Notes under the pieces: generated by a model
The model's database searches: none
The model's input: the letters and a program-made list of their open reading frames with translations, nothing else
What the model was told of the DNA's origin: nothing
In this document: piece by piece, positions 4,790-64,000 of the stretch
Layout of the letters: each line of letters opens with the position of its first letter
How positions within the stretch are numbered: the first letter of the stretch is position 1
IMG/VR virus record: IMGVR_UViG_3300030102_006934
Coordinates: 316,344 to 380,343 of that record
Length of the DNA: 64,000 bases
Reading direction: 5' to 3' (one strand)
Made by a program: the position numbers and the translations under genes

Positions 4790-4806
4790 ATTAAAAAACA
4801 AAAAAA

Positions 4807-5061
4807 ATGAATTTATTAAATAATATCGTAGATTATTACGAAGAAGAGGAAATATTAAAGGCAGATGGTTTCGATGAGGCGGTTATTGGTATAGAAGAAG
4901 GTACCATGAGATTGATTTATTCAGTTACTAAGTGTATTGAAATACTAATGACTGAAGATGATATGTCTATGGAAGATGCTATGGAACATTTTAGATATAA
5001 TGTTAGTGGTGCTTATGTTGGTAAAAAAACACCTATATGGTCAGAGGATATGTTTTATTAA
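4807..5061 (+). CDS. Conserved phage hypothetical protein
   Basis: LKADGFDEAVIG...YNVSGAYVGKKTP pattern recalled from large phages. Confidence 0.7.
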   Translation: MNLLNNIVDYYEEEEILKADGFDEAVIGIEEGTMRLIYSVTKCIEILMTEDDMSMEDAMEHFRYNVSGAYVGKKTPIWSEDMFY

Positions 5062-5198
5062 CATATTTATATAGTAGTAAAATAACTTTTACATAATTTG
5101 TTTTTTTATATAGAAATAATGTACAATATTTTTGAACCAGAGAACATTCATGACGAGGATGACGAGTTAGATATTTTCTAGTATATTTATTAGAAAAT

Positions 5199-5272
5199 GG
5201 GGGATTAGCTCAGCTGGCTAGAGCACCTGCCTTGCACGCAGGGGGTCATCGGTTCGACTCCGATATCCTCCA
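5199..5272 (+). tRNA. tRNA-Ala(TGC)
   Basis: CCTGC-CTTGCAC-GCAGG; G3-U70 pair. Confidence 0.95.
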
Positions 5273-5335
5273 CAATAAAATTGTTTTTACTCACCACTAT
5301 CACTTATTAACTATCTTACTATATTTATATTCGAT

Positions 5336-5788
5336 ATGTTAGATGAATTTATATTGAATACTAAAGAGGCGAGATTAATACAAATCGATTATAAATTGAT
5401 TACTGGCGATTTAAATGAGGAGTTACTATCCAAAATGTCACCTCAAGAACAAATTAACACATATAACTTAGCTTTACTACTACCTAGTAGAAGTTGTGAA
5501 GAAGACGATGAACTTTATTGGGATCAAATACTAGTTGATGAATTTATATTATCTTATTTAGAACAAATACTAAATAAAAGAAAAATAAAATATTTTTTAA
5601 CTGACATAACAAAAGATTATTATAAAAAATCTAGTTACCTTGACCTTGATTTTATAAAAGATATCGATGGGTTTATGGATACCTTATTAACTATTGATGA
5701 TGTTTTGGATAGGATAAATGATGTTGGTTTGGATAAGATAAATTTATTGGAGTTATCTTTTTTAGAAAGGAATTCTAGTAAGTTTTAG
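5336..5788 (+). CDS. Hypothetical protein
   Basis: 150-aa ORF; ATATTTAT at 5321. Confidence 0.7.
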   Translation: MLDEFILNTKEARLIQIDYKLITGDLNEELLSKMSPQEQINTYNLALLLPSRSCEEDDELYWDQILVDEFILSYLEQILNKRKIKYFLTDITKDYYKKSSYLDLDFIKDIDGFMDTLLTIDDVLDRINDVGLDKINLLELSFLERNSSKF

Positions 5789-5820
5789 TTTAAACGTTAA
5801 TATTTATAATAAAAGGTCGT

Positions 5821-6330
5821 ATGAAGGTCTTAGTATTGAATATGGATTACAGTCCTATAAACGTAACATCCCTACAGAGAGGTTTTAAGTTAGTATTTAA
5901 AGGAAAGGCAGAAATAGTAACACACGAAATAAAAAACCCAATCAAAACGGAAAGAAAAAAATACAGAAGACCAACGGTAATAAGACTTTTAAGATATATT
6001 TCAGTACCATTTAGAAAGGTTAAATTAAATAGACAAAATATTTTTAGGAGAGACGATTATAAGTGTGTGTACTGTTACTCCAAAGATAACCTCACCTTAG
6101 ACCATTTAATACCTAAATGTAAGGGTGGTCAAAATAGTTGGTCTAATTTAGTTACTTCTTGTGGTAGTTGTAATGTTAAAAAGGGTGATAAGGATGTTGA
6201 CTTATTCTTAGAAGAGAATAACATTGAAATGAGTCATCAACCATTTAAACCAACATACTTATATTTTGTAGAAAAAATAAATAATGTAAACCCAGATTGG
6301 AAACAGTTTGTGGGTATAGTAAAAAAATAA
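5821..6330 (+). CDS. HNH endonuclease
   Basis: VLVLNMDYSP N-terminus; CVYC, LTLDHLIP, NLVTSCGSCN. Confidence 0.9.
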   Translation: MKVLVLNMDYSPINVTSLQRGFKLVFKGKAEIVTHEIKNPIKTERKKYRRPTVIRLLRYISVPFRKVKLNRQNIFRRDDYKCVYCYSKDNLTLDHLIPKCKGGQNSWSNLVTSCGSCNVKKGDKDVDLFLEENNIEMSHQPFKPTYLYFVEKINNVNPDWKQFVGIVKK

Positions 6331-6331
6331 A

Positions 6332-6490
6332 ATGGATTTCGAGTTAGGTAAGGATTATTATTTAGAGAATGGTAAAATAGTTTTAACAGAAATATACCAT
6401 AAAAAAAGAGGTACTTGTTGTGGTTCTAATTGTAGACATTGTGCCTATGAGCCACCACATCAAAAAGGTAATAAAAAATTAAAAGAATAA
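6332..6490 (+). CDS. Small Cys-rich protein (DUF5522-like); absent from the ORF track
   Basis: Translates DYYLENGKIVLTEIYHKKRGTCCGSNCRHCAY. Confidence 0.75.
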   Translation: MDFELGKDYYLENGKIVLTEIYHKKRGTCCGSNCRHCAYEPPHQKGNKKLKE

Positions 6491-6505
6491 TATATTTATA
6501 ACTAT

Positions 6506-7216
6506 ATGGAATGGGAAGGTTATGATTGGCAAATAGGTGAGAGATGGGGTATTATTCACCCAAATAAACCAATTTGTTATTACGATAAGGACGCGGTTAA
6601 AATAAATAAAAAGGGTGAACTAGAATTATACACACACTATAACCCTAGAAAATTTGATGGTAAAACTGTTAACACAGGCGTTGGTTTGATTAATTGCAAA
6701 GAGAAGTTCGAATATGGTAGGTTCGACATAGATATTAAATTACCTAAAGGACCATCTTTGTGGCCAGCTTTTTGGATGTGGTCTTATAACTTTTGGCCAC
6801 CAGAGATTGATGTGTTTGAGGCGTACTCAAATAAAAAGGGTAGTTATTTTAATTGGAATATAGATGCTCTTTGGGGGAACTTTTGGAATGTTAAGAGTAA
6901 TTTACATTTGGGAATTCAACCAGAAAATTATCAATATGGTGCAAAAAGACATTGGTTGGGCTGGGAATGTCCTAGTAAGGATTTTCATAAGTATAGTGTG
7001 GAGTGGTTCCCAAATGAGGTAAACATTCTATTTGACGATAGATTGGTCAGAAAAATTAATGATGAAAAAACTTTATCACAATTAAGAGATTTCCCAATGA
7101 ATGTTATTATAAATACACACATTAGGCCAGGTTACCCAGCAGAGGATAAAGAATTAATCACAAAAATGGTTTGTAAAAACTTTAGATACTCTAAGTTTTA
7201 CCCTTACAATTTATAG
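6506..7216 (+). CDS. Glycoside hydrolase family 16 protein
   Basis: YGRFDIDIKLP, LWPAFWM, WPPEIDVFE catalytic ExDxxE. Confidence 0.85.
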   Translation: MEWEGYDWQIGERWGIIHPNKPICYYDKDAVKINKKGELELYTHYNPRKFDGKTVNTGVGLINCKEKFEYGRFDIDIKLPKGPSLWPAFWMWSYNFWPPEIDVFEAYSNKKGSYFNWNIDALWGNFWNVKSNLHLGIQPENYQYGAKRHWLGWECPSKDFHKYSVEWFPNEVNILFDDRLVRKINDEKTLSQLRDFPMNVIINTHIRPGYPAEDKELITKMVCKNFRYSKFYPYNL

Positions 7217-7273
7217 AATTGTATTGACAAAAATATTTTTTTGGTTATATTAATAAAAAAAAAGTTATAAATT

Positions 7274-7705
7274 ATGGATAATTTAAATTTCGGAAGTATG
7301 GATGATGATTTATTTAGAAAAGATTTTTTGAATTTTTTAAATCAACACCAAAAAAGGATGAGTGATTTCATGAAAAAAATGTATGGTGATAATAATTTAA
7401 ATTCCGGTCAGTCATTTGACGAAATCATGTCAAGACTAAATATTACCCCCAATAATATAGAAAGGGGTGAGGATGAGTATGGGACTTGGGAGAATAGTGA
7501 ATGGTTCTCAAATGATGGTAATACTCATTACAACTCTTTTTTCAGAGAATTTAACCCATATAAAGACATAAAACCAAGGAGTAAAACTCAAGAGATTAGC
7601 ACCCTTGATTTATTGGAGTCAAAGTTAAACAAGTCTATATTAGAAGAGGATTACGAATCCGCGGCTAAAATTAGAGATTTGATGAAGTCTTTGAGTGAAG
7701 ATTAA
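7274..7705 (+). CDS. Protein with C-terminal UVR (UvrB/UvrC) motif
   Basis: LESKLNKSILEEDYESAAKIRDLM. Confidence 0.75.
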   Translation: MDNLNFGSMDDDLFRKDFLNFLNQHQKRMSDFMKKMYGDNNLNSGQSFDEIMSRLNITPNNIERGEDEYGTWENSEWFSNDGNTHYNSFFREFNPYKDIKPRSKTQEISTLDLLESKLNKSILEEDYESAAKIRDLMKSLSED

Positions 7706-19978: not shown

Positions 19979-20167
19979 ATGTTAAAAACCGAAGTCAAAA
20001 AGGGGAATATTGAAAAAGCTTTGAAATCTTACAAAAGTAAGGTTATAAAGACTAGACAAATGAAATTACTAAATAGTAAAAAAGAATTTGAAAAGCCTTC
20101 TGTTAGAAAAAGAAGGGAAAAACAAAAAGGTGCTTATAAGCAAAAAATAAGAAGGGAGAACGATTAG
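19979..20167 (+). CDS. rpsU: Ribosomal protein bS21
   Basis: IEKALKSYKSKV...KKEFEKPSVRKR...KGAY. Confidence 0.9.
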   Translation: MLKTEVKKGNIEKALKSYKSKVIKTRQMKLLNSKKEFEKPSVRKRREKQKGAYKQKIRREND

Positions 20168-54571: not shown

Positions 54572-57157
54572 ATGAGAGTTTTAATAAATAAAATATTAAA
54601 AGAGTTACATAGTAAAAGTATTATTAAAAAAGTACTTAATGAAAATTACCAGGACGAAAATATATCACAAGAAGAAAAAAATAGTATCATTGATGAGTAT
54701 GGGTGGTTAAAAAATGAAGAAAAAATTGAAAGTATTTTAAAAAACCCGCCTTTTTCAAAGAAAACTAGGACCTATAGAATAGTTAATAGCTATAGGGTTA
54801 GGTATATTATATCTAAGGAAATAAAAAAAAATGTATATTTTAATAACGCGGGTTGGGCTAACTTTGTAAAGAAGGTGGGTCAAGTAATAGGCTTAAAAAT
54901 AAAAGCAACAGATGATACCGTTTCAAAATTCTTTAAAAATATCGATGAGACCAAAAAATATGGTTTAGAGGGGAAACATTTAGAAGATAGAAAAAATACT
55001 TCCACGGAGTTAAAAAAGAATTGGAATAAAATAGACCCTGAAGTATACGAAGAAAGAATAGAACATACTATTAATTATTTAAAAAATACCAATATTACAG
55101 AATTGGAAAATTCAAAGACAAGCTTATTGACACGGTTTTCTTTAATACTAAGATACCAAGAAGAAATAATGAACTATCTTATTGATTATTTTAAAGATGA
55201 CCCAAAAATAAGGTTTTATCTTAGTTATCTTAATAAAGGTGGAAAATATTGGGGTACACTTGTAAAATACCAAAAAAAACTAAGTAATGTGCTAGACAAC
55301 CCTAATATTAGTGAAAAATATGATGACATTGTAGAAATGAAAAAATCATATAAGGCTATTATTGAAGAAGAAGCACCTTATTTGTTTAACGAAAAGGGTA
55401 ATTTTACTAAAAAAGAAAAGGAAATATTAGTAAATTGGTTTAATTTAACAAGTTATGAACATTCTTTCACAGAATTAGGGTTTTATAAACCAGAAGGAAA
55501 AGGTGCGGAGTCTTTAATACATAATCTACACAGTGCAGGTATTAGATACAATGTTAGTAATGAAATAAAAAATAATACTGATACTGATGACGTTGTAAAA
55601 TTTGTGATAAACAATATTATTAATTATTTAAAAAACACAAAAGATATAATTAAATACGATATTGTTAGTAAAGATACTATAAAAGATATTAATGGAAATG
55701 AAGTGATTCCAAAGGGTAGTAAAATAGAGGTTAAAGACATTAAGAATAGTGATAGTTATTTTGCTGAATTTTTATCATCACCTGTTAAAAGCGGTTCAGA
55801 AATATTGAATAATGAAGTTTATAGAGGAAGGTATAATAAAATAATAGAAGGAATTTATAATTGGTTATCTAACGATAGTGTGGGTATGGGTATTAAAAAT
55901 ACTATTAAGTGGTTAATGACTAACGATTTAGAAGGTATAATAATATCTAATAATATCTATGTCCCTAATAAAGATGGTAACATTGAATTTTATTTATCTA
56001 ATATTGGTCAAAACAACCCAAAAAATCATATAAGAATTACAATAAGATATAATATTAATTTAGATAAATCGAAAAATTTCTATAAAATAGGAGATGGTAA
56101 GTGGAAATTAAACGGTAAAGCATCCAAAAAAGGTATTCTTTACCCACTACCAGAAACAGAAAGTAATTTAATAAGACCCATAGAGAAACAAATTTATAAA
56201 ACAATAGAAGAATCTAAGACTAAATCTACAATAAATAAAATATTAAAAGAAGAATTCGATGATTTCGATTGGATTAAGGACACTTTTACCGAACTAAACA
56301 AAAGTGAAAAATGGATGTTGGTTAATGATATAGACCGTGAGAGTATATCGGAAGGTCATGAAATACAAAAATATCTATTTGACTTGGGTTATAGTTGGGG
56401 TACTGGTGATTTAAAAAATTCACTAAAAGATTTTTGTATCTATACAATATATCATTTCGGAAATATTAGAAATGATGAACACTTATATTACGGAGATGGT
56501 TGTAGAAGTGCTGATATAAGAATTTCAGATAAAGATATTAAAAGTGGTGAACATATAGTTTATTATTGGAGTGAGTTAAAACCTAAAACAATAAAGGAAG
56601 AAAACGATTTTAAATGGATTGATGAACCAAGAAACAACCCATTAGATGGTTTAAGATTAACAACACCTATGGGTAGAGCTGGTAGTGGTGGTAGTGGTTT
56701 AACAATAAAAGACGATGGTGGTACATATGTTACTGTTACCTCTTCTAACGGTTCTAGTGAATATCATAGGGGTACTGTTAAAAACTTTATAAGAATGGGT
56801 ATTTGGTTACCAATAGATTCTATGAATGAATCAGATGATTTTGATTGGGCGAAAGAAATAAAACCAACGTTGAATGTTGCCTTTGAAGAAGGTCTGATTA
56901 AAGCGGGTGATATTTTGACACTTTCTGGGGAACTAATGGATGATGAAGGAAGACACACAATACAAGTTTCAGATTTTAAAATAAAAATAGATCAAATATA
57001 TGGGCCTAATAGTGTATATAGAGACATCACCAGTTCTCTTTTCATACCACTACAAGAAAAATATTTCAAACACTTAGGTTATTATGAAAATGAATTTAAT
57101 GATTCTATCAGATTTGCTAAGAAAGATGGTGAGTTAGAAATATTAGATATATCTTAA
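54572..57157 (+). CDS. 861-aa modular xE-DFDW polyprotein
   Basis: Large module homologous to module 2 of 42891; ILKEEFDDFDWI, IKEENDFKWI, MNESDDFDWA. Confidence 0.9.
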   Translation: MRVLINKILKELHSKSIIKKVLNENYQDENISQEEKNSIIDEYGWLKNEEKIESILKNPPFSKKTRTYRIVNSYRVRYIISKEIKKNVYFNNAGWANFVKKVGQVIGLKIKATDDTVSKFFKNIDETKKYGLEGKHLEDRKNTSTELKKNWNKIDPEVYEERIEHTINYLKNTNITELENSKTSLLTRFSLILRYQEEIMNYLIDYFKDDPKIRFYLSYLNKGGKYWGTLVKYQKKLSNVLDNPNISEKYDDIVEMKKSYKAIIEEEAPYLFNEKGNFTKKEKEILVNWFNLTSYEHSFTELGFYKPEGKGAESLIHNLHSAGIRYNVSNEIKNNTDTDDVVKFVINNIINYLKNTKDIIKYDIVSKDTIKDINGNEVIPKGSKIEVKDIKNSDSYFAEFLSSPVKSGSEILNNEVYRGRYNKIIEGIYNWLSNDSVGMGIKNTIKWLMTNDLEGIIISNNIYVPNKDGNIEFYLSNIGQNNPKNHIRITIRYNINLDKSKNFYKIGDGKWKLNGKASKKGILYPLPETESNLIRPIEKQIYKTIEESKTKSTINKILKEEFDDFDWIKDTFTELNKSEKWMLVNDIDRESISEGHEIQKYLFDLGYSWGTGDLKNSLKDFCIYTIYHFGNIRNDEHLYYGDGCRSADIRISDKDIKSGEHIVYYWSELKPKTIKEENDFKWIDEPRNNPLDGLRLTTPMGRAGSGGSGLTIKDDGGTYVTVTSSNGSSEYHRGTVKNFIRMGIWLPIDSMNESDDFDWAKEIKPTLNVAFEEGLIKAGDILTLSGELMDDEGRHTIQVSDFKIKIDQIYGPNSVYRDITSSLFIPLQEKYFKHLGYYENEFNDSIRFAKKDGELEILDIS

Positions 57158-57177
57158 ATAACAATTAGTATTTACGT

Positions 57178-57260
57178 ACCTCATATTATATGAGGTTTTT
57201 TTATGCCTAAAATTTGACCGTTTAAAATATTATTAATACATTAGTAATAATTAAAAAAAG
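57178..57260 (+). promoter_or_regulatory. Terminator plus TTGACC-N17-TACATT promoter cassette, copy 1
   Basis: ACCTCATAT/ATATGAGGT hairpin; promoter 57214-57242. Confidence 0.75.
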
Positions 57261-57263
57261 AAA

Positions 57264-57566
57264 ATGAAAAAATATATTGTAATAGAAAGAAGTAGAACAA
57301 GAAAATCCTTTGATTTTATCAATGGTGACACTAAAAACTTGGTTGATATATGGCATACGAGTTGCCCTTATGAACTATCTGACACTAAAAAAGGTGAGTT
57401 GAATCCTTTGTTGTTTGAAAGTAAACAAGATGCTGCCAAGTATAAAAATATACTACAGTCTGTGGCGAATGAAGATTGGGCGGAGAATAAACACTACCAC
57501 AAAATGTACGGTGACTCCAAACCAAAATGGAAAGTAGAAGAGTATAATGGTAATTTATTTATATAA
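57264..57566 (+). CDS. Hypothetical protein
   Basis: 100-aa ORF. Confidence 0.7.
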   Translation: MKKYIVIERSRTRKSFDFINGDTKNLVDIWHTSCPYELSDTKKGELNPLLFESKQDAAKYKNILQSVANEDWAENKHYHKMYGDSKPKWKVEEYNGNLFI

Positions 57567-57578
57567 ACTAGGATAAAA

Positions 57579-57959
57579 ATGGTTCAGAAAAAAATAAACG
57601 GAGACTTAATAGAAAAAATAGAAGTATTTGAAGACCCAACTCAGGAGAAAGATTTTAAATTGGTTAGACAATCAATGTTTAAGAGAATTAAAAACTTTCT
57701 TACAGGTACCGAACCGAAAAAAAGGATGAGGATTGGTGATAGGAGTATCTTCACTTGTTATATATACGATTTAGATAAGTTTTTTATCAAAAATAAAGAT
57801 GTTTATTTTCTAAGAAATGGTTTGGTGTATAGAAACCCTAATGTAGAAATAAAAATGGTTTCTGATGATGATGTTTATATTAAACATTTTAAGTCAAAAA
57901 AAGATTTACATAACTGGTTAGATGAAAACGTGAAAGTTTTAAGATTAATAACAATTTAA
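57579..57959 (+). CDS. Hypothetical protein
   Basis: 126-aa ORF. Confidence 0.7.
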   Translation: MVQKKINGDLIEKIEVFEDPTQEKDFKLVRQSMFKRIKNFLTGTEPKKRMRIGDRSIFTCYIYDLDKFFIKNKDVYFLRNGLVYRNPNVEIKMVSDDDVYIKHFKSKKDLHNWLDENVKVLRLITI

Positions 57960-57972
57960 AATAGAGAAGCAA

Positions 57973-58356
57973 ATGGAGTTTAGAACTAGAAAATTAGTAA
58001 GACCTGTAGATCTTAATTCTGGTGGAAGTCTGTTTGGTGGTCAGTTACTAAAATGGATTGATGAGGAAGCGGCTATTTTTGCCATGTGTCAATTAGATAG
58101 TCAACGAGTGACTACCAAGTTCATATCGGAAATAGACTTTGTTTCTCCCGCTATGAATGGTGATGTAATTGAAATAGGTTTGGGTGTAGTTAAGTTTGGG
58201 AATACTTCGATAACTATTAAATGTGAAGTTAGAGTTAAAAAAACAGAGAAGACAATTTTAACCATTGAGAGGATGGTATTCGTAAATCTATCTGAAAGTT
58301 TTAAACCAGTAAAACACCATAAAACCGATATTAAAAAACAAAACAAAAATGATTAA
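57973..58356 (+). CDS. Acyl-CoA thioesterase (hotdog fold)
   Basis: DLNSGGSLFGGQLLKWIDEEA, IDFVSP, FGNTSI. Confidence 0.9.
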   Translation: MEFRTRKLVRPVDLNSGGSLFGGQLLKWIDEEAAIFAMCQLDSQRVTTKFISEIDFVSPAMNGDVIEIGLGVVKFGNTSITIKCEVRVKKTEKTILTIERMVFVNLSESFKPVKHHKTDIKKQNKND

Positions 58357-58585
58357 AGAAAAAAAACATACAATAGATTTAGAATATTTTAAAAAATATG
58401 TTGAAACTTATGATTATACCGATTTTGAATATAATGAAACATTTATAAAAGATATGATTTATGGTATTGGTTTAGCTGTTAACGGTGATAATTTCAAAAT
58501 GGCTGATGGTTATAAAAGATTTGAAGAGTTCTTATTAAATGAAATTATAAAACAAAAAGAAGATGAGACACGAAGATTACGTTAG
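58349..58585 (+). CDS. Hypothetical protein
   Basis: 78-aa ORF. Confidence 0.7.
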   Translation: MIKEKKHTIDLEYFKKYVETYDYTDFEYNETFIKDMIYGIGLAVNGDNFKMADGYKRFEEFLLNEIIKQKEDETRRLR

Positions 58586-58679
58586 AGATATGGACTGGGC
58601 TTTATCAAAAGGAATTACTATTGGTATTTTTATAGGAATTGTCATAAGTATTTTATTATATTCAATAACTAAATTATAA
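58563..58679 (+). CDS. 38-aa single-TM peptide; absent from the ORF track
   Basis: Follows the start-associated motif; GITIGIFIGIVISILLY. Confidence 0.6.
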   Translation: MRHEDYVRDMDWALSKGITIGIFIGIVISILLYSITKL

Positions 58680-58691
58680 ACCAAAACAAAG

Positions 58692-58943
58692 ATGAGAAGT
58701 AAAATTGGGGTGGTTTGGACCCTTTTAATAATTTTTTTCCCAAAATGGTCATACCCACAAGGATGTTCTCAGTGTAAACTTCTGGTTGAGCAGGGTAGTG
58801 AACTTGGTGAAAGTTCATTTGGGAGTAACATCAATCTAGGTATATTATTTTTAATGGTAATACCATATTTGATTATAATTATTATTTTTAGAGAACAAAT
58901 AAAAAATTTTTTACGTTTAAAATTTGGCCGTTCAAAATATTAA
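58692..58943 (+). CDS. Bacteroidota-type small membrane protein with CxxC
   Basis: QGCSQCK...NINLGILFLMVIPY. Confidence 0.7.
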   Translation: MRSKIGVVWTLLIIFFPKWSYPQGCSQCKLLVEQGSELGESSFGSNINLGILFLMVIPYLIIIIIFREQIKNFLRLKFGRSKY

Positions 58944-58952
58944 AACTATATT
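58924..58952 (+). promoter_or_regulatory. Promoter cassette variant
   Basis: TTGGCC-N17-TATATT-AGTAGTAATTAAAAAAAAGATG. Confidence 0.65.
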
Positions 58953-58971
58953 AGTAGTAATTAAAAAAAAG

Positions 58972-59178
58972 ATGGTTGATTATATTTTAATAGGATTAGT
59001 TCTAACATTTATTTTAGAGATAACGACAATTTATTATGCTGACAAGATTATGGTTATGAGGGATGATGAACCTTTCATTCGGTTCTCTATGTTGGAGAGG
59101 TTATTTGTAGTAGTAATATGGCCAGCTGTGGTGGGAATTTTTTTATATGTATTATTTAAAAAGGAAAATCATGAGTAG
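58972..59178 (+). CDS. Small two-TM protein
   Basis: ATG 58972 follows the promoter cassette. Confidence 0.65.
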   Translation: MVDYILIGLVLTFILEITTIYYADKIMVMRDDEPFIRFSMLERLFVVVIWPAVVGIFLYVLFKKENHE

Positions 59179-59248
59179 AGAATTATTTGTATTGATTTAT
59201 TTTTCCATAGCTATATTAGCGTTTATAATTGTAAAACAGAAAAAATGA
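59171..59248 (+). CDS. 25-aa single-TM peptide
   Basis: MSRELFVLIYFSIAILAFIIVKQKK; overlaps both neighbours. Confidence 0.5.
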   Translation: MSRELFVLIYFSIAILAFIIVKQKK

Positions 59249-59481
59249 AAGCAAAAGATAAGGCAAATGAGTTAGGTAACAAATTTTACCAAGGAAGTGT
59301 CTTCGATTATGATAAAGAAGAACACGTAGAAGAAAAGAAAAAGGCAAAAAAACGTGCTCATGTTTGTATAGATGTATTTATAGACTTTCTTCACAGACAA
59401 ACAGATAAACAAACAAAACTAAAAGGCGTTACACCAGTAGAGTATTGGGAAAAAGTCAAAGAAGAAGTGTATAATTTATAA
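59245..59481 (+). CDS. Conserved phage hypothetical protein
   Basis: MKAKDKANEL...YWEKVKEE. Confidence 0.7.
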   Translation: MKAKDKANELGNKFYQGSVFDYDKEEHVEEKKKAKKRAHVCIDVFIDFLHRQTDKQTKLKGVTPVEYWEKVKEEVYNL

Positions 59482-59499
59482 ACCAAAACAAAGAAGATA

Positions 59500-59598
59500 A
59501 TGAAAGATAAACACAAAGCATTTGTATATGGATTTATACTTGCTAGTATAATGTATTTTATAGCAGGTTGTATGATAATAGGTGTATATTTTAAATAA
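59500..59598 (+). CDS. 32-aa single-TM peptide
   Basis: Follows the repeat motif; AFVYGFILASIMYFIAGCMIIGVYF. Confidence 0.6.
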   Translation: MKDKHKAFVYGFILASIMYFIAGCMIIGVYFK

Positions 59599-59616
59599 CT
59601 AAAAACATAAACAAAG

Positions 59617-59811
59617 ATGAGTAGTGCGGTGTGGATAGTTGAATATGAAAACCATATCTACAATTTACAAGATAGAGATGGTAGTTTCAAGAAAGGAGAT
59701 TTGTTTTTTGAAAGAGCGGGTAGACTGGGTCCTATTGAGTGGGATGGTAAGGAAAAGCTTAATTACCATTGTAAAAAAATAGTGAGTATTAAACAAAAAA
59801 AAGATGAGTGA
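59617..59811 (+). CDS. Hypothetical protein
   Basis: Starts at a repeat variant. Confidence 0.65.
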   Translation: MSSAVWIVEYENHIYNLQDRDGSFKKGDLFFERAGRLGPIEWDGKEKLNYHCKKIVSIKQKKDE

Positions 59812-60004
59812 ATTAAAAGGAGAGTGGTTGGTAAAATTAAGTGTTGATTTGGGTTCGGACAAAGATAATTTACTAGAAGTGTTGTCTGATGTGGTGGATA
59901 TAGTCGCTGATGGGGATGAAGATACTAAATACAAAATAATGTTTCTTGAAAAATTTGAGGACCGAAGTTCAGTAGATAATAATAAAAATAAAGAAAATGA
60001 GTAA
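59804..60004 (+). CDS. Hypothetical protein
   Basis: Starts at a repeat variant. Confidence 0.65.
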   Translation: MSELKGEWLVKLSVDLGSDKDNLLEVLSDVVDIVADGDEDTKYKIMFLEKFEDRSSVDNNKNKENE

Positions 60005-60077
60005 AGACTTTGATAAGTGGGAAGAAAGAGCAAAGAAAAACACAGAAATCATTGAGCAACAACAAACCAAAACAAAG

Positions 60078-60176
60078 ATGGGTAAAGAAGAAAATACGGG
60101 TTGTTTTGAAACATGGTTAGGAATCGTAGTCTTTTCCATAATAATGATATTAATAATGATGATAAACGAATATTAG
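60078..60176 (+). CDS. 32-aa single-TM peptide, copy 1
   Basis: MGKEENTGCFETWLGIVVFSIIMILIMMINEY; near-duplicate of 62922-63014. Confidence 0.7.
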   Translation: MGKEENTGCFETWLGIVVFSIIMILIMMINEY

Positions 60177-60218
60177 TGAATACAAGGTATTTTTTATACT
60201 TAGATAATATTTATTAAT

Positions 60219-60974
60219 ATGAGAAAGATGGGTAGAATAACCGAAAAAGATATCAGTAGACTTATTAGTATTATAAGAGAAAATAATGAATTAAAGTCTG
60301 ATAATCAAGATTGGGGTTGGTTTGATCGATTTGGTTTTGGTAAAGGGGATTATACAGAAGAAAAAACTCAAAAAGAACTAGAGTCTCTTAGATGGAAAAA
60401 TGTTAAAAGTGGTGATGTATTAATAATACACCCAGATGATAGAACAACCGATTTTCTTAAACCGACTTATTCTGACTTGGATGCTACTATTCTAACACAA
60501 TCTAATGAATTCTTTAATCTAGCGGAAACCATGAAAAGACATAATAGAATTATTATGATGGGCCATGGTTCACCAAGTGGTTTATTTATGCCAAAAGTAG
60601 AGGGTATAGAAGAAGATGAAAATGGTGAGTTATTCGAGTACACTGATTACGCAATCAACAACTCATACGCTGATATTTTAAGAGAAAAACGTACTGTATG
60701 TGTTTGGTGTAATGCTGATAGATATGTTGTACCTAATGATTTACATGGTTTTTACACAGGGATGGCTATTTCAGAACTTTGTGAAGCCGATTATTGTGAT
60801 GTTAAAGGGTGTAACCCAAAACAACTAGAAGAATCAAATACTAAGTTTACAATGGGTTTAAAAGAATCGTTAAAAGTAGATGGACCAGGTTCTGTAAATA
60901 TCTTCAAAGAAATTTATAATAACCCAGAAAACCCTATCATGGTCTATAATAGAAAAAGACTTTATTATAGATAA
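60219..60974 (+). CDS. Leader-bearing protein, possible His-Cys dyad peptidase fold
   Basis: ATATTTAT at 60207; IIRE; IIMMGHGS and CVWCNA. Confidence 0.7.
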   Translation: MRKMGRITEKDISRLISIIRENNELKSDNQDWGWFDRFGFGKGDYTEEKTQKELESLRWKNVKSGDVLIIHPDDRTTDFLKPTYSDLDATILTQSNEFFNLAETMKRHNRIIMMGHGSPSGLFMPKVEGIEEDENGELFEYTDYAINNSYADILREKRTVCVWCNADRYVVPNDLHGFYTGMAISELCEADYCDVKGCNPKQLEESNTKFTMGLKESLKVDGPGSVNIFKEIYNNPENPIMVYNRKRLYYR

Positions 60975-60986
60975 TAAAAAGAAATT

Positions 60987-61295
60987 ATGGGAAGAATAGA
61001 AAGACAAAAAGTACAGTTAATAAAAGAAGCTAATAAAAGGATATTAAAAGAGGGTGAGGGATTAGATTTTCACTTGGAGGAACTTTCCGAGTTTGTGATT
61101 CATTTGAAAAATAAGGCGTATGACAAACATGACGAAATTAGTCATGATGAACTCACTGAATACGATATACAGAAAATAAAAGAGATACTACAAAACGCCA
61201 AAGAAGATAAAACATTGAGTGCTGATGAGATGATCATTGTTAGTAAATATGGAGAAGGTATAATTGATAGAATCAATCAAAAATCAGATAAATAA
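60987..61295 (+). CDS. Leader family hypothetical protein
   Basis: LIKEANKRILKE-G. Confidence 0.7.
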   Translation: MGRIERQKVQLIKEANKRILKEGEGLDFHLEELSEFVIHLKNKAYDKHDEISHDELTEYDIQKIKEILQNAKEDKTLSADEMIIVSKYGEGIIDRINQKSDK

Positions 61296-61309
61296 TAAAA
61301 ATATGAAAT

Positions 61310-61396
61310 AACCCCTTATAGAAATATAAGGGTTTTTTATGCCTAAAATTTGACTCTTTGAAATATTGTTAATACATTAGTGGTAATTAAAAAAAG
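61310..61396 (+). promoter_or_regulatory. Terminator plus TTGACT-N17-TACATT promoter cassette, copy 2
   Basis: CCCTTATA-gaaa-TATAAGGG hairpin; promoter 61350-61378; homologous to 57178-57260. Confidence 0.75.
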
Positions 61397-61588
61397 ATGA
61401 GTAGTAAAAGAGAAAGACAACTAGAAGAAAGACTCAGACATTTAGAGATAGAAATAAAAGCGGAACGTCAATGGAACAATATACCAGACCCACTAAAACC
61501 TACATCTAAAGGAAGATGGGACCAAATGACAGAAGAATTAAAAACTCAGGAGAGTAGACGATTAAGTTGGCCAAACAATCATTATTAA
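61397..61588 (+). CDS. Hypothetical protein
   Basis: First gene after the promoter cassette. Confidence 0.65.
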   Translation: MSSKRERQLEERLRHLEIEIKAERQWNNIPDPLKPTSKGRWDQMTEELKTQESRRLSWPNNHY

Positions 61589-61600
61589 AACAAAACAAAG

Positions 61601-61693
61601 ATGAGTGATAAAGAATATAAATTATGGTTATTTGTTATTATAGGAACCGTATTATGGGGAATTATTTTAATGATATTAAACTTTATAAATTAA
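61601..61693 (+). CDS. 30-aa single-TM peptide
   Basis: MSDKEYKLWLFVIIGTVLWGIILMILNFIN after the repeat motif. Confidence 0.6.
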   Translation: MSDKEYKLWLFVIIGTVLWGIILMILNFIN

Positions 61694-61696
61694 ACT

Positions 61697-61879
61697 ATGA
61701 TAGAATATACTAAAATTGATGCTTTAAAATATTTGGCTAATACTAAACTAGATAATATAAACGAATGGACAGAAGCTGCTATGGGTAATTTTCTCTCTAA
61801 GGTTATATTAGAAGATGACAACAAAATATATACCAAAGAAGAACTGGATAGATTTATAAAAACAGCATCTAATGCTTAA
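61697..61879 (+). CDS. Hypothetical protein
   Basis: 60-aa ORF. Confidence 0.65.
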   Translation: MIEYTKIDALKYLANTKLDNINEWTEAAMGNFLSKVILEDDNKIYTKEELDRFIKTASNA

Positions 61880-61891
61880 ACCAAAACGAAG

Positions 61892-62140
61892 ATGAGCAGT
61901 AAAAGAATAGAAATAAATGAAAAAATGTTAGTTGATTTCTCATTAGAAATTGACATCAAAGAATTAACGATTTGGGGAAATACAAATCAAATAGAAAAGG
62001 TTATTGAAAATTCAGTTAGCCAATTTAAGGAAGAGATTAAAAGTGACTTAATCCATAAATTAGAACAAGAGACAGAGTTTGAAACATTAGGGTTAGACAG
62101 AATAGCTTTTGAAATAAACCAAAACAAAGATGAGTTATGA
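61892..62140 (+). CDS. Hypothetical protein
   Basis: Starts at the repeat; C-terminus INQNKDEL is the translated repeat. Confidence 0.65.
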   Translation: MSSKRIEINEKMLVDFSLEIDIKELTIWGNTNQIEKVIENSVSQFKEEIKSDLIHKLEQETEFETLGLDRIAFEINQNKDEL

Positions 62141-62349
62141 AACAAGAAAATAGAATAATTAGAATGATAATGGATTCCGATACTGTTTATGTTGATGGTA
62201 TGACAATAAAGGATAGAGAAAATTTAGAAACACATCCTAATGTTAATGAAGTGATGAAGAATATCGATAACTACTTTATTACATCTTTTAATAGAGACAG
62301 TAAGAAAGGTAAACGATATTTGGAACTACGTAGTGAATATGTTTTATAA
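62137..62349 (+). CDS. Hypothetical protein
   Basis: 70-aa ORF. Confidence 0.65.
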   Translation: MKQENRIIRMIMDSDTVYVDGMTIKDRENLETHPNVNEVMKNIDNYFITSFNRDSKKGKRYLELRSEYVL

Positions 62350-62369
62350 ACACAATCTAAACCAAAACA

Positions 62370-62690
62370 ATGATGAATAGATTACAAGATAAACATGAAA
62401 TATCATCTTATGAAGAAAAGGCAAAAGTTCTTAGAGAGAATGGGTGGGAAACTTGGTATAACGATGATAACTGGATAAAAACAGAGTGGATTGACCAAGG
62501 TAAAAAGGTTGATATGATGGGGAGAACAACTGACTCCGCTTATACACTAGAAAAAGATTTACAAATCATTGATGACTTGGTTCAGGTTAAATCTTTAAAT
62601 GAAGAAGATTTTAGATATAAAAATTGGACCACTGTTACAAGGTACCTAGCAACTGGATTACAAGGTGTTGAAATAAGAGAAATAAATTAA
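62370..62690 (+). CDS. Hypothetical protein
   Basis: Starts at a repeat variant. Confidence 0.7.
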   Translation: MMNRLQDKHEISSYEEKAKVLRENGWETWYNDDNWIKTEWIDQGKKVDMMGRTTDSAYTLEKDLQIIDDLVQVKSLNEEDFRYKNWTTVTRYLATGLQGVEIREIN

Positions 62691-62710
62691 ACCAAAACAA
62701 GACAAAGAAG

Positions 62711-62929
62711 ATGAGTAAAGAAGAATATAATAAAAAATGGGTTGAGTTAAATCAGGAAATACAGAAACTTAATAGAGATAGGTTTAATTTATACATACAG
62801 TATCAAAAAGAATTTGGGCCATTAAACCTAACTATTGACAGAAACGTATCTCTTTATTATGATTTTAACGGTAATGATATTGACTTAAACAAAGAAAGAA
62901 AATTAGTAAACCAAAACAAAGATGAGTGA
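62711..62929 (+). CDS. Hypothetical protein
   Basis: Starts at a repeat variant; ends VNQNKDE. Confidence 0.65.
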   Translation: MSKEEYNKKWVELNQEIQKLNRDRFNLYIQYQKEFGPLNLTIDRNVSLYYDFNGNDIDLNKERKLVNQNKDE

Positions 62930-63014
62930 AGAAGAAAATACAGGTTGTTTTGAAACATGGTTAGGAATCGTAATCTTTTCCATAGTAATGATATTATTAA
63001 TGATGATAAAATAA
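62922..63014 (+). CDS. 30-aa single-TM peptide, copy 2
   Basis: MSEEENTGCFETWLGIVIFSIVMILLMMIK. Confidence 0.7.
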   Translation: MSEEENTGCFETWLGIVIFSIVMILLMMIK

Positions 63015-63026
63015 AAATGGTAAATT

Positions 63027-63341
63027 ATGGATAAAAAAAACGTAATAGAACAATACAAAGAAATAGCAAAAACATATTCATCTTTTGAAGATTGTTATAA
63101 ACTTATGACTGAAACTAATAATATTGAAGTCTGTAAATTTTGTTTAGATTATGATGGTGTTTGGAAAAGACTTGAATTACAATGGATGTTAGAGTTTTTT
63201 CAAAACAACGAAGAATATGAAAAATGTGAAGTTTTGAAAAAATTGATAGGTGAACATTTTATTGCCGATGAAATTAAACAAAATGAGTTGAATAGCAAAT
63301 TAGATGAATATGTTTCTAATATAAACAAAGATGATGAGTGA
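63027..63341 (+). CDS. Hypothetical protein with UVR-like motif
   Basis: FFQNNEEYEKCEVLKKLI. Confidence 0.7.
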   Translation: MDKKNVIEQYKEIAKTYSSFEDCYKLMTETNNIEVCKFCLDYDGVWKRLELQWMLEFFQNNEEYEKCEVLKKLIGEHFIADEIKQNELNSKLDEYVSNINKDDE

Positions 63342-63567
63342 AAACATAGAAATAACACAAGGTGAATGGGACCACTTACATGATGTGATATTAGACGCAA
63401 CATGGGAATCTGGTAAACTAAAACTATCCCAAAAAGAGTTAGAGAGTTTATTTGATGAACTTCCATCTCACATAAAAGATGATGCGTATCACTGGGGTAT
63501 TAATGATACGGTTGTTAGAGACAACATCTATGTGTGGTATCAAAAAAATAAATTAAAAAAAAAATAA
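63331..63567 (+). CDS. Hypothetical protein
   Basis: Starts at a repeat variant. Confidence 0.7.
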   Translation: MMSENIEITQGEWDHLHDVILDATWESGKLKLSQKELESLFDELPSHIKDDAYHWGINDTVVRDNIYVWYQKNKLKKK

Positions 63568-63579
63568 ATTAAAACAAAG

Positions 63580-63876
63580 ATGAGTAAACAATATAATGTA
63601 AAGTATGAAGTAGGACAGGATGTCTATGTATTAAGAGATAAAAAAATAAGTAAAAATAGGATAGACAAGATTAGAGTTACCGAACAACAACCTTATACTA
63701 AGGGTAATTCAGATGGAACTCTTACTGAAATGTTGGGTATTGAAATAGATTATCTTATAGAAACAAAAAGAGATTTCATACATCCACATACAAAAAGTAC
63801 CCAAAGTTCATACGATTGGTATAGTCAAGAAGATGTCTTTACTAATAAGGATGAATTGATTGCACAAATTGTATAA
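63580..63876 (+). CDS. Hypothetical protein
   Basis: Starts at a repeat variant; KYEVGQDVY. Confidence 0.7.
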   Translation: MSKQYNVKYEVGQDVYVLRDKKISKNRIDKIRVTEQQPYTKGNSDGTLTEMLGIEIDYLIETKRDFIHPHTKSTQSSYDWYSQEDVFTNKDELIAQIV

Positions 63877-63888
63877 ACCAAAACAAAG

Positions 63889-64000
63889 ATGAGTAAAAAG
63901 AAATTTATAGAAAGAAGACCAAATTATTTTTCAGGGTTTGAAGATAGTGAGTATGAGGTAGACAACTTCAATCAAGTTTTAGAAATACCCTTCGTAAAAA
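63889..64000 (+). CDS. Hypothetical protein, 3'-truncated by the window edge
   Basis: ATG after an exact repeat; MSKKKFIERRPNYFSGFE... open to the end. Confidence 0.65.
   Translation, partial: MSKKKFIERRPNYFSGFEDSEYEVDNFNQVLEIPFVK

Follow-up and report, generated by a model that had tools for sequence, protein, structure and literature searches.

A near-identical stop-start sequence between small genes of a marine phage appears to serve as a translation start site and as a common linker for gene exchange

Introduction

Short repeated sequences associated with small phage genes have been described in several systems. In Cluster K mycobacteriophages, start-associated sequences (SAS) are short asymmetric repeats in one orientation that lie immediately upstream of the start codons of non-structural genes only, prefer ATG, sometimes contain the upstream stop codon and are absent from the host genome, and their role is presumed to be translational (Pope et al. 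2011, PMC3203893). In T4-type phages, promoter-early stem-loop (PeSL) cassettes place short conserved regulatory repeats between small non-essential ORFan genes in hyperplastic regions, where recombination between copies causes insertions, deletions and replacements and is proposed to move genes between phages (Arbiol et al. 2010, PMC2839356; Comeau et al. 2014, PMC4122927). Integrons carry arrays of small, mostly promoterless, same-orientation cassettes separated by a repeated site (attC), with a highly variable cassette content shared between replicons. At the level of translation, Bacteroidia use Shine-Dalgarno-independent, "Kozak-like" initiation regions, and A at -3, -6, -12 and -13 are the positive determinants measured in Flavobacterium johnsoniae (Baez et al. 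2019, PMC6847099), while bacterial and phage operons use overlapping stop-start translational coupling (ATGA, TAATG).

Here we analyzed a 64,000-nucleotide stretch (hereafter the window) of a 380-kb marine phage genome, positions 316,344 to 380,343 of the IMG/VR record IMGVR_UViG_3300030102_006934, in which a 24-nt sequence that ends one small gene and starts the next is repeated almost letter for letter; such copies lie between dozens of tiny genes in this phage and in unrelated phages. In contrast to SAS, which are 13 bp, GC-rich, contain a Shine-Dalgarno core 3-7 bp from the start and are confined to one phage cluster, this motif has no Shine-Dalgarno sequence, includes the ATG and the next codons and crosses unrelated lineages; also, SAS have not been described as a cassette boundary or as a three-frame stop. 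PeSLs are transcription units in which each gene has its own sigma-70 promoter and terminator hairpin, whereas the linker described here lies inside operons, has no promoter or hairpin and would work, if at all, at translation, although three PeSL-like terminator/promoter units coexist with it in the window. It differs from attC sites in having no inverted repeat or hairpin, in being fused to stop and start codons and in residing on phage genomes, in five of which we looked for an integrase and found none. It shares with the Bacteroidia initiation regions A at -3, -6, -12 and -13, an A-run at -14 to -11 and low structure, but those regions are a statistical tendency with no fixed sequence, whereas this is a fixed 24-mer with invariant C and G positions that is absent from host genes. 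Finally, unlike in ordinary stop-start coupling, one conserved sequence supplies stops for all three frames at fixed positions and is reused at every junction.

Results

A discrete motif restricted to two arrays

The first-pass annotation had reported about 15 copies or variants of a junction element in 5.3 kb, nearly always fusing an upstream TAA to the next ATG, and this observation is confirmed and turns out to be larger than reported. By searching the window for the 18-mer TAAACCAAAACAAAGATG with up to 3 mismatches, we found 17 matches, while shuffled sequences gave a mean of 0.42 and a maximum of 3. Sixteen of them are on the + strand and 13 lie at 58334-63891. The consensus T-TAAACCAAAACAAAG-ATG-AGTAA has 13 strong and 3 weaker same-strand copies at 58.3-63.9 kb of the window, and all the coordinates listed in the annotation hold a copy or a variant. 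The protein tails that it had noted (INQNKDEL, VNQNKDE and INKDDE) and the 7-codon ORF MSYETRK at 62130 are also as described.

Then, we tested whether the motif is merely the generic A-rich start context of this genome, and it is not. A weight-matrix scan of the whole 380,343-bp genome gave 25 sites scoring 20 or more, all on the + strand and all in two clusters, with a bimodal score distribution in which the next-best sites elsewhere score below 17. The start context of 441 other genes is only weakly A-rich: G at -1 occurs in 7% of them against 55% of the 38 genes in the two array regions, and C at -11, -10 and -5 occurs in 5-7% against 39-47%. The motif is absent from the first 57 kb of the window, as had been noted, but it is not unique to this locus, since a second, paralogous array (array A) lies at genome 89.7-92.4 kb. 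The contigs are metagenomic; the array in the window is cut off by the end of the contig and array A contains a 10-N gap. Moreover, about a third of the genes inside the arrays lack the motif and have ordinary leaders, so it is not needed for expression there.

Organization of the array in the window

Four copies on the + strand, as are all features below, are perfect. The copy at 58677-58700 (matrix score 35.2) provides with its TAA the stop of a 38-aa gene, and its ATG at 58692 starts an 83-aa gene. The copy at 62115-62138 opens only 7 codons from its own ATG (62130), the 70-aa ORF starting at ATG 62137 in another frame, and it forms the left edge of a cassette that is 100% identical to array A over 77 nt. 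The copy at 62907-62930 starts a 30-aa membrane protein, the second copy of the cassette at 60063-60176; in metagenome data its word depth is about 4 times that of neighbouring stretches, and a joint 58676->62907 shares 20 nt. The copy at 63874-63897 starts a gene that runs off the contig end and whose array A copy is 165 aa; this junction is a recombinant of two array A junctions.

Four copies have a single mismatch. The one at 60063-60086 has CAA instead of TAA, so that the upstream ORF (from 59997) reads through in frame into the small membrane-protein cassette (ATG 60078); genome 376407-376509 matches 379251-379353 at 94%, with homology starting at the motif. Those at 61586-61609 (score 30.4) and 61877-61900 (score 31.4) start a 30-aa membrane protein (ATG 61601) and an 82-aa gene (ATG 61892), respectively. 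The one at 62358-62381 starts a 106-aa gene and is the left breakpoint of a 1.2-kb, five-gene segment present here and absent from array A. The right breakpoint of this segment is the motif at 63565-63588 (2 mismatches), which starts a 98-aa gene.

The remaining copies are more divergent. The variant at 58334-58357 (3 mismatches, score 23.7) starts a 78-aa gene (ATG 58349) and is the left edge of a cassette shared with array A, genome 374680-374909 matching 89545-89775 at 95%. A weak variant at 58548-58571 (score 16.2) starts the 38-aa membrane-protein gene (ATG 58563), a cassette 95.5% identical to one in another record, G001. At 59479-59502, AAG replaces ATG and the real start lies at 59500, 6 nt on (32-aa membrane protein); the same AAG variant recurs in other phages. 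Degenerate motifs at 59602-59625 (score 26.1) and 59789-59812 (score 20.5) start a 64-aa gene (ATG 59617), whose cassette has homologues in the records L022, L043 and L090, and a 66-aa gene (ATG 59804), whose upstream ORF ends in ...KQKKDE at the +5 stop. The motif at 62688-62719 carries a small internal insertion (…CAAGACAAAGAAG-ATG) and starts a 72-aa gene (ATG 62711), while 63322-63342 is a half copy (TATAAACAAAGATGATG) that starts a 78-aa gene.

In addition, three separate units divide the array into transcription units. The first, at 57178-57263, consists of a hairpin terminator, a promoter-like element (TTTGACC, 17-20 nt, TACATTAG) and an A-rich leader. The second, at 58905-58974, has the promoter-like element and leader but no clear hairpin, precedes ATG 58972 and is 78% identical over 68 nt to the third. 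The third, at 61313-61399, has a hairpin terminator (61313-61332) with a T-run, the promoter-like element and the leader before ATG 61397.

The motif is shared by unrelated phage lineages

The exact 17-mer was found in at least 117 viral loci, at least 44 of them, in other marine viral contigs, with same-strand arrays of 3-25 copies. These include lineages sharing almost no genes, that is jumbo phages, a 110-kb phage, a Crassvirales-like group and a 34-kb siphovirus-like phage. In nine other records searched in full the motif sits in one to three tight clusters, with 0-1 hits for the reversed control. In contrast, 118 of 120 cellular-genome loci fetched hold at most one strong site, and the three with two to four lie on two MAG contigs that are probably misbinned phage; cultured phages showed nothing. 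Neighbouring genes have their best or only cultured relatives in Cellulophaga and Flavobacterium phages.

Near-identical cassettes are shared between arrays in scrambled order

Homology blocks between arrays are single cassettes bounded by the motif, in scrambled order, and are 95-98% identical between genomes whose other proteins are about 39% identical. Indeed, the order of shared cassettes is scrambled between the genomes G000 and G001, and these cassettes are 94-98% identical in protein while 62 other shared proteins have a median of 39%. We observed that 67% of the starts of inter-array homology blocks lie within -25..+10 of a motif ATG, against 15% for random positions, and three-way alignments place crossovers inside the motif with the flanks swapped on either side. 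However, homology blocks also break at non-motif gene starts inside arrays at about 60% of the per-junction rate (0.23 against 0.37), so the motif is associated with breakpoints rather than proven to cause them. All 44 arrays form one network of shared cassettes, which includes a 435-bp block at 97% identity between a Crassvirales-like contig and a 126-kb fragment of a larger phage. Metagenome unitigs branch at motif copies and run on into different neighbours.

Features related to translation and search for a dedicated factor

The motif carries stop codons in all three frames: TAA at -15, the TGA overlapping the ATG, and TAA/TGA at +5. Of 259 upstream ORFs, 183 end at one of these three embedded stops (74, 59 and 50), and each stop is kept in 58-100% of the sites where it is not used, although site selection used a matrix built from the motif, which inflates the apparent conservation inside it. 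The predicted unpaired probability of the motif is higher (0.72 against 0.58, p = 3e-4). RNA runs gave only a few short contigs.

We also looked for a factor that could read the motif. The phage does encode bS21, but only 5 of 31 motif-bearing records have the gene, and it is missing from three records judged 96-100% complete. No RegA homologue was found, no tyrosine recombinase was found in five carriers, four of them 96-100% complete, and four near-complete motif-bearing genomes share no BLAST-detectable protein. Complementarity to Flavobacteriaceae 16S rRNA is no better than for shuffled motifs.

Discussion

Together these data lead us to favour, with moderate confidence only, a stop/reinitiation translation linker whose identical copies allow homologous cassette exchange. 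In this view, the element joins small accessory genes inside polycistronic, probably early, operons of marine phages that very likely infect Flavobacteriia. At the RNA level, it would stop the upstream reading frame, whichever of the three frames it is in, and offer the host ribosome an unstructured, Shine-Dalgarno-free initiation site of the Bacteroidia type, with adenines at -14 to -12, -6 and -3, placed 12 nt after or overlapping the stop, the next gene then being translated by de novo initiation or by termination-reinitiation. At the DNA level, near-identical copies flanking every cassette would give ordinary homologous recombination about 20-25 bp of identity on each side, so that cassettes could be deleted, duplicated, reordered and swapped, both between arrays of one genome and between co-infecting phages of unrelated lineages, and any crossover inside the linker would recreate a correct stop and start. 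What our analysis shows directly is the sequence, its restriction to arrays and its spread across lineages, the three-frame stop usage, the cassette-sized homology blocks, the crossovers inside the motif and the near-identical cassettes in very different genomes, whereas the translational role, co-transcription, the early timing, the recombination pathway and the host are inferred. Generic favourable features such as adenines and openness do not explain why C at -11, -10 and -5 and G at -1 are nearly invariant in hundreds of copies, which points either to a sequence-specific reader that we could not find or to constant homogenisation by recombination.

The interpretation in the first-pass annotation, a combined translation enhancer and microhomology site driving gain, loss and duplication of small early genes, or a binding site for a phage translational regulator with bS21-modified ribosomes as one candidate, is partly supported. 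The motif is a discrete element, gain, loss, duplication and reordering of small genes have their breakpoints in it, and its sequence fits what favours initiation in Flavobacterium. On the other hand, neither the link to phage bS21 nor a phage-encoded regulator in general is supported, and the claim that the motif drives recombination is overstated. The sharing by unrelated lineages, the three-frame stops and the division of the array into operons by separate terminator-promoter units had not been foreseen.

Among the alternatives, a purely translational signal, kept identical by selection for an optimal site read by the host ribosome while the mosaic arises by the usual illegitimate recombination followed by selection for intact genes, is possible but unlikely. 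It accommodates the breaks at non-motif gene starts, the match to the Flavobacterium determinants and the openness of the motif, but host genomes do not use this sequence (singletons only, and no gene class), crossovers map inside the motif, 20 nt are shared at a metagenome joint, and identical 17-mers in unrelated lineages are hard to reach by convergence alone. About equally doubtful is an operator for a sequence-specific trans-acting factor (a translational repressor or activator, a bS21-modified ribosome, a small RNA or a host RNA-binding protein) that would define a co-regulated set of accessory genes. The near-invariance of non-adenine positions, the fixed register with the ATG, the restriction to one gene class and the analogy with T4 RegA sites, which cover the AUG, speak for it, whereas the distribution of bS21, the absence of a RegA homologue, the lack of any BLAST-detectable protein shared by four near-complete carriers and a complementarity to 16S rRNA no better than that of shuffled motifs speak against it; a host-encoded factor is not excluded.

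The other readings appear improbable. An RNA processing site, where an endoribonuclease would release monocistronic or near-leaderless mRNAs or inactivate early mRNAs as T4 RegB does, would agree with a single-stranded, A- and C-rich sequence that contains ACA and is repeated at every junction of a polycistron, and nucleases have comparable short targets. However, no nuclease is shared among the four near-complete carriers compared, and this reading does not explain the three-frame stops or the fixed distance to the ATG better than translation does. Still less likely is a role at the DNA or transcription level, either as a phage promoter starting transcripts at or near the ATG or as a stoperator-like repressor site: the motif is asymmetric, in one orientation and at stop/start junctions, like cluster A stoperators (mentioned in PMC3203893), and early regions of T4-type phages carry very dense promoters (PMC2839356), but it bears no resemblance to the Bacteroidota promoter elements TTTG and TAnnTTTG, separate promoter-like and terminator units exist in the same array, its occurrence in lineages with no BLAST-detectable protein in common makes a shared phage-encoded polymerase or sigma factor unlikely, and the strict register with ATG and stops would remain unexplained. 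An integron-like system with a dedicated recombinase is very unlikely: although the arrays consist of small, promoterless, same-orientation ORFan cassettes separated by a repeated site and shared between unrelated replicons, the carriers examined have neither a tyrosine recombinase nor a common protein, and the site is 24 nt of A and C with no inverted repeat, unlike attC. Finally, chimeric joining of strains at a repeat during assembly could be suspected from the position at a contig end, the 10-N gap of array A and the unitigs breaking at the motif, but it is the least likely reading, since arrays occur in at least 44 independent contigs from many samples. Also, unique parts of the array have an even depth of about 32x in the probable source run, with cassettes shared with array A running higher, up to about double, and one complete genome with terminal repeats carries an internal array.

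The repeat is a discrete element of the genome

The window covers the last 64 kb of a viral record of 380,343 bp (hereafter G000) with about 30% G+C. By searching the window for the 18-mer TAAACCAAAACAAAGATG with up to three mismatches, we found 17 matches, whereas dinucleotide-preserving shuffles give a mean of 0.42. Sixteen of the matches are on the + strand and 13 lie between 58334 and 63891. The observation made in the first-pass annotation was confirmed, since every position that it had assigned to the repeat holds a copy or a recognisable variant, and the C-terminal protein tails and the seven-codon ORF at 62130 that it had described are also present. A crude gene call for the whole genome gave 479 genes. 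The 441 genes outside the arrays have only a weak A-rich start context, whereas the array genes show T-15, AAA, CC, AAAA, C, AAA, G-1, ATG, AGT. Then, we scanned both strands with a weight matrix built from the copies and found 25 sites scoring 20 or more, all of them on the + strand and all in two clusters, while nothing elsewhere scores above 17. The sites were selected with a matrix derived from the motif itself. The element is therefore discrete and far beyond chance.

Two arrays share cassettes bounded by the motif

The array of the window (array B) lies at genome 374.6-380.3 kb, that is window 58.3-63.9 kb, and runs to the contig end, and a second one (array A) lies at genome 89.7-92.4 kb. 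First, we observed that they share four blocks at 95-100% nucleotide identity, each bounded by motif copies. Second, between two blocks that are adjacent in A, array B holds 1.2 kb with five genes, and between two blocks that are adjacent in B, array A holds two genes. Third, three-way alignments of the junctions (genome 90771-90845 against 378670-378744 and 379877-379951, and 380196-380256 against 91090-91150 and 91470-91530) show that the left flank matches one partner up to the motif while the right flank matches the other partner from the motif on. Within B, a cassette encoding a 30-aa membrane protein is duplicated (60063-60176 and 62907-63014), with homology beginning at the motif. In the first copy the TAA has become CAA, so that the upstream ORF is fused in frame. 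At another cassette (window 62130-62153 and genome 90644-90667) the ATG of the motif opens only MSYETRK and the 70-aa ORF starts 7 nt later in another frame. The sequence is identical in both arrays, so it is not a sequencing error, and it may be a leader peptide or a start shifted by a 1-nt change.

The record ends at window position 64000 inside a cassette that continues in array A (98% identity over the last 127 nt), so B is truncated by assembly, and array A contains a 10-N gap (genome 90703-90712). The arrays of two other motif-bearing records, G002 and G005, also sit at contig ends, so the repeats evidently break assemblies. In the probable source run, the unique parts of B have an even word depth of about 32, and the cassettes shared with A run higher, up to about double, which fits two arrays in one genome.

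Terminator/promoter-like units divide the array

Three copies of an approximately 70-85-nt unit lie at window 57178-57263, 58905-58974 and 61313-61399. Each consists of a G+C-rich hairpin with a T-run (present in two of the three), then TTTGAC, 17-20 nt, TA(c/t)ATTAG, and a short A-rich leader ending in AAAG(A)ATG. These look like terminator/promoter units and split the array into putative operons, inside each of which no terminators lie between the cassettes. The motif is thus the internal junction of these inferred polycistrons, not their promoter. However, four RNA or RNA-like runs gave only a few short contigs, too little to show transcription, and about a third of the genes in the arrays have ordinary leaders without the motif. 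Searching all arrays for the Bacteroidota-type promoter pattern gave 12 forward matches, 9 reverse and 4.7 in shuffles, which is too weak to use beyond the three copies of this window. In the array region of G005 (locus L048, positions about 4800-7420), three canonical Bacteroidota-type promoters (TTTG, about 19 nt, TAnnTTTG) end 4-5 nt before an ATG, which suggests leaderless transcripts in that phage.

The motif carries a stop codon in each frame

Read in frame with its ATG, the motif is TAA ACC AAA ACA AAG ATG AGT AA and carries a stop in each frame: TAA at -15, TGA overlapping the ATG at +1, and TAA or TGA at +5. Across 259 sites in all arrays with a clear upstream ORF, 183 ORFs end at one of these three stops, in similar numbers (74 at +5, 59 at -15 and 50 at +1). 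We considered whether the three stops merely reflect the local upstream ORFs, but rejected this because each stop is retained in 58-100% of the sites where the upstream ORF does not use it. The three-frame stop is therefore a property of the consensus itself, and it explains the recurrent C-terminal tails, ...NQNKDE in one frame and ...KPKQR in another.

The upstream part of the motif has adenines at -14 to -12, -6 and -3. These are the positions shown by ribosome profiling and GFP reporters to promote initiation in Flavobacterium johnsoniae, whose ribosomes ignore Shine-Dalgarno sequences (PMC6847099). By direct reading, the consensus has the adenines at -3, -6, -12 and -13 of Shine-Dalgarno-independent initiation regions of Bacteroidia, and its predicted secondary structure is weak, with an unpaired probability over -18..+2 of 0.72 for motif genes against 0.58 for the other genes (p = 3e-4). 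In contrast, the motif does not qualify as a Shine-Dalgarno site, that is a purine-rich stretch complementary to the 3' end of 16S rRNA 5-10 nt upstream of the start. Its complementarity to Polaribacter or Dokdonia 16S rRNA, whether Shine-Dalgarno-like or as tethering, is no better than that of shuffled versions, either to the whole molecule or to the 3' tail (duplex with the tail of -3.5 kcal/mol against a shuffle mean of -4.8), and the start logos of the genome show no G peak.

The same element occurs in unrelated phages

By scanning 2.9 million viral contigs for the exact 17-mer, we found at least 117 loci, 44 of which have three or more same-strand sites, and one of which has 25 consecutive small genes each preceded by the motif. 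In nine further records searched in full, copies are confined to one to three tight clusters on one strand, while the reversed-pattern control gives 0-1 hits. The median spacing between copies is 213 nt and the median ORF is 61 aa. All carriers are metagenomic contigs. We also scanned one genome per prokaryotic species, which gave at least 120 loci. In 118 of the 120 loci fetched there is at most one strong site, in all kinds of taxa and with no common gene. The other three lie on two MAG contigs with 2-4 motif copies, L227 (MAG binned as Campylobacteraceae) and L221 and L233 (MAG binned as Promethearchaeia). L227 shares cassettes and flanking genes with viral contigs, and both are probably phage contigs binned by mistake. 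No cultured phage in the collection shows the array: megablast and sensitive blastn of the array and tblastn of a cassette protein against 50,697 phage records gave no real match, and Cellulophaga phage phi14:2, the nearest cultured relative of one carrier group, has no copy with up to 3 mismatches. A full-text literature search for the motif string found nothing relevant.

The carriers are not one lineage (completeness figures are CheckV estimates). G001, a 156-kb record (96% complete), shares 67 of its 259 called proteins with G000, and the 62 that lie outside its array have a median identity of 39%. G024 (110 kb, direct terminal repeats, 100% complete) shares 5 ORFs with G000 and 1 with G001. 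G032 (34 kb, 100% complete) shares 1-3 weak hits with each of the others and none with all of them. We found no conserved neighbour gene next to the arrays, as the commonest, a helicase, is in only 10 of 46 loci. In this group of ten loci the helicase is 46% identical to that of Cellulophaga phage phi14:2, a member of Crassvirales, and it is absent from six large carriers. The tape-measure-like protein of G032 hits only Flavobacterium phages, and all samples are marine or aquatic. We infer that the hosts are Flavobacteriia, as supported by these relatives, by the lack of Shine-Dalgarno signal and by the promoter-like TTTG...TAnnTT(A/T)G elements, although this is not demonstrated for G000 itself, whose SNF2 helicase was uninformative on the host.

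Cassettes move between arrays

Between arrays of different contigs there are 216 homology blocks of at least 90 bp and at least 80% identity. We observed that 67% of block starts lie within -25..+10 of a motif ATG, and that 48% of block ends lie within -25..+12 with most of the rest just beyond, whereas random positions give 15%. Seven cassettes of G001 are 95.5-98.3% identical in DNA to cassettes of G000 but in scrambled order, the G000 order c1-c5 appearing as c4, c3, c5, c1, c2. These are among the most similar segments of two genomes that otherwise share about 12.8 kb of alignment, mostly at 66-88% identity. Homologous cassettes keep the motif (about 89% identity) even when their proteins are under 70% identical, while the 30 nt upstream of the motif are then at random-level identity, which means different neighbours. 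However, per junction, block starts are only 1.6 times more frequent at motif junctions than at non-motif gene starts (0.37 against 0.23, with 15 events in the second class), so the data show association and crossovers inside the motif but do not show that the motif is required.

All 44 arrays form one connected network of shared cassettes, which includes a 435-bp block at 97.2% between a contig of the Crassvirales-like group and a 126-kb fragment of a larger phage. In four marine metagenomes, unitigs end or branch at motif copies and run on into other sequences. One joint shares 20 nt, which is the motif, and in two samples only the cassettes shared with array A are deep. Joints that go back to an earlier position, as expected from circular single-cassette molecules formed by exchange between neighbouring repeats, were seen in these unitigs with short sides only (33-74 nt), which fit other arrays equally well.

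Candidate readers of the motif

The first-pass annotation had proposed phage bS21 as a candidate factor acting on the motif. G000 does encode a bS21 homologue in the window (19991-20143, + strand; PF01165, 40 bits, E = 1e-10). However, bS21 is found in G000 and in the motif-bearing records G004, G005, G012 and G017 only, that is in 5 of 31 carrier records, and it is missing from G001 (96% complete), G024 (100%) and G032 (100%), so co-occurrence with the motif does not hold. A search for the RegA family (PF01818) found no homologue in five carriers, but the control genomes contain no positive either. The tyrosine recombinase family PF00589 is absent from G000, G001, G002, G024 and G032, while all 14 control genomes were positive. 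Rfam gave no hit at 57000-64000, and BLASTP found no protein common to four near-complete carriers, although remote homologues could be missed. Pfam and PHROGs searches with 20 array proteins gave nothing, except for a 4HBT-family thioesterase (PF03061, E = 3e-15; window 57973-58356, + strand) directly upstream of the first motif copy, an unusual auxiliary gene for a phage, and one weak PHROG of unknown function. A dedicated, orthologous phage-encoded reader or recombinase is therefore unlikely, and the host ribosome, a host factor and general homologous recombination remain. The interpretation put forward in the first-pass annotation, a translation enhancer that is also a recombination site or else a target of a phage regulator, is only partly supported.

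A putative linker for translation and for cassette exchange

We conclude, with moderate confidence, that the element is a stop/reinitiation linker that doubles as a recombination linker. What the analysis establishes is the sequence and its arrays, the three stops, the cassette-sized homology and the crossovers within the motif, whereas both functions are inferences. The translational role, including any gain in initiation in a Flavobacterium host, is inferred from the register of the motif, its three stops, its match to the Flavobacterium determinants, its openness and its place inside the putative operons. The role in exchange is inferred from cassette-sized homology, crossovers within the motif and the lack of any site-specific enzyme. 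The length of identity (about 20-25 bp) is close to what is reportedly the minimal length for efficient RecA-dependent exchange in E. coli (Shen and Huang 1986). This model leaves the near-invariance of the C and G positions unexplained: either a sequence-specific reader exists, or frequent exchange homogenises the copies.

A bolder reading is not excluded by the evidence, though we consider it unlikely. In this view, unrelated phages of marine Flavobacteriia would share one common pool of small accessory genes held together by a universal 24-nt stop/start linker, a recombinase-free counterpart of the integron. Any cassette, in any reading frame, could be dropped between two linkers of any carrier phage and be correctly terminated and translated at once. 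In its strongest form, the linker would also be read by a specific host or phage factor setting the timing or level of expression of the whole pool, and the invariant C and G positions would be the recognition code of that factor.

Comparison with known repeats

The motif behaves like the start-associated sequences (SAS) of Cluster K mycobacteriophages (PMC3203893) in position, orientation and gene class: it occurs in one orientation, at the starts of non-structural genes only and, as judged from the scan of prokaryotic genomes, is absent from the host genome. It differs in crossing lineages and in including the start codon, and while SAS have a 13-bp consensus GGGATAGGAGCCC with a Shine-Dalgarno core 3-7 bp upstream of the start, the motif has no G-rich core and abuts the ATG. 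It also behaves like the PeSLs of T4-type phages (PMC2839356, PMC4122927) in its inferred role in modular shuffling of ORFan genes, and insertions, deletions and replacements between related genomes have their end points in the repeat. PeSLs carry a strong sigma-70-type early promoter and a terminator stem-loop in each repeat, whereas the motif is 24 nt of A and C that lies inside the putative operons and has no hairpin or promoter hexamers. The separate units at 57178-57263, 58905-58974 and 61313-61399 resemble PeSLs and coexist with the linker in the same array. Finally, the arrays resemble integron cassette arrays in architecture but lack both defining features, as the five carriers searched have no integrase and the motif, by direct reading, has no self-complementary bases and hence none of the imperfect inverted repeats by which attC folds as a hairpin. 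We place the motif, as a variant, among the start-associated or linker repeats already known from phage accessory regions.

The old modular theory of phage evolution supposed that conserved linker sequences sit between exchangeable modules, but clear examples are rare and lie within one phage group, such as PeSLs in T4-type phages. Here, a single linker is shared by phages ranging from 34 kb to 380 kb that have almost no genes in common, and cassettes are 95-98% identical across them, so exchange is recent and crosses lineages. Given that its inferred role is translational rather than transcriptional, the linker gives a defined, compact sequence with which to study how ribosomes that ignore Shine-Dalgarno sequences pick start codons and reinitiate within operons in Bacteroidia. 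The cassettes encode uncharacterised small proteins, many of them membrane-spanning, and sit where host-takeover and anti-defence genes usually lie. The motif is therefore a search handle for collecting hundreds of such genes from metagenomes.

Other features of the carrier genomes

The only large gene in array B (window 60219-60974, + strand) encodes 251 aa with no Pfam or PHROG hit. It has a GHGSPSG stretch and a later WCNAD stretch that loosely recall a His/Cys protease dyad, and a metagenome joint (60216->61313) skips it together with the next gene. Outside the window, a cluster of glycosyltransferase genes (Glycos_transf_1 and three Gly_transf_sug) at genome 197.5-206.3 kb (locus L255) is shared with the otherwise distant phage G001 at 82-88% DNA identity, which makes it a second horizontally exchanged region. 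Also outside the window, G000 has a single open reading frame of 4,098 codons at genome 237155-249451, and G024 has one of 4,198 codons.
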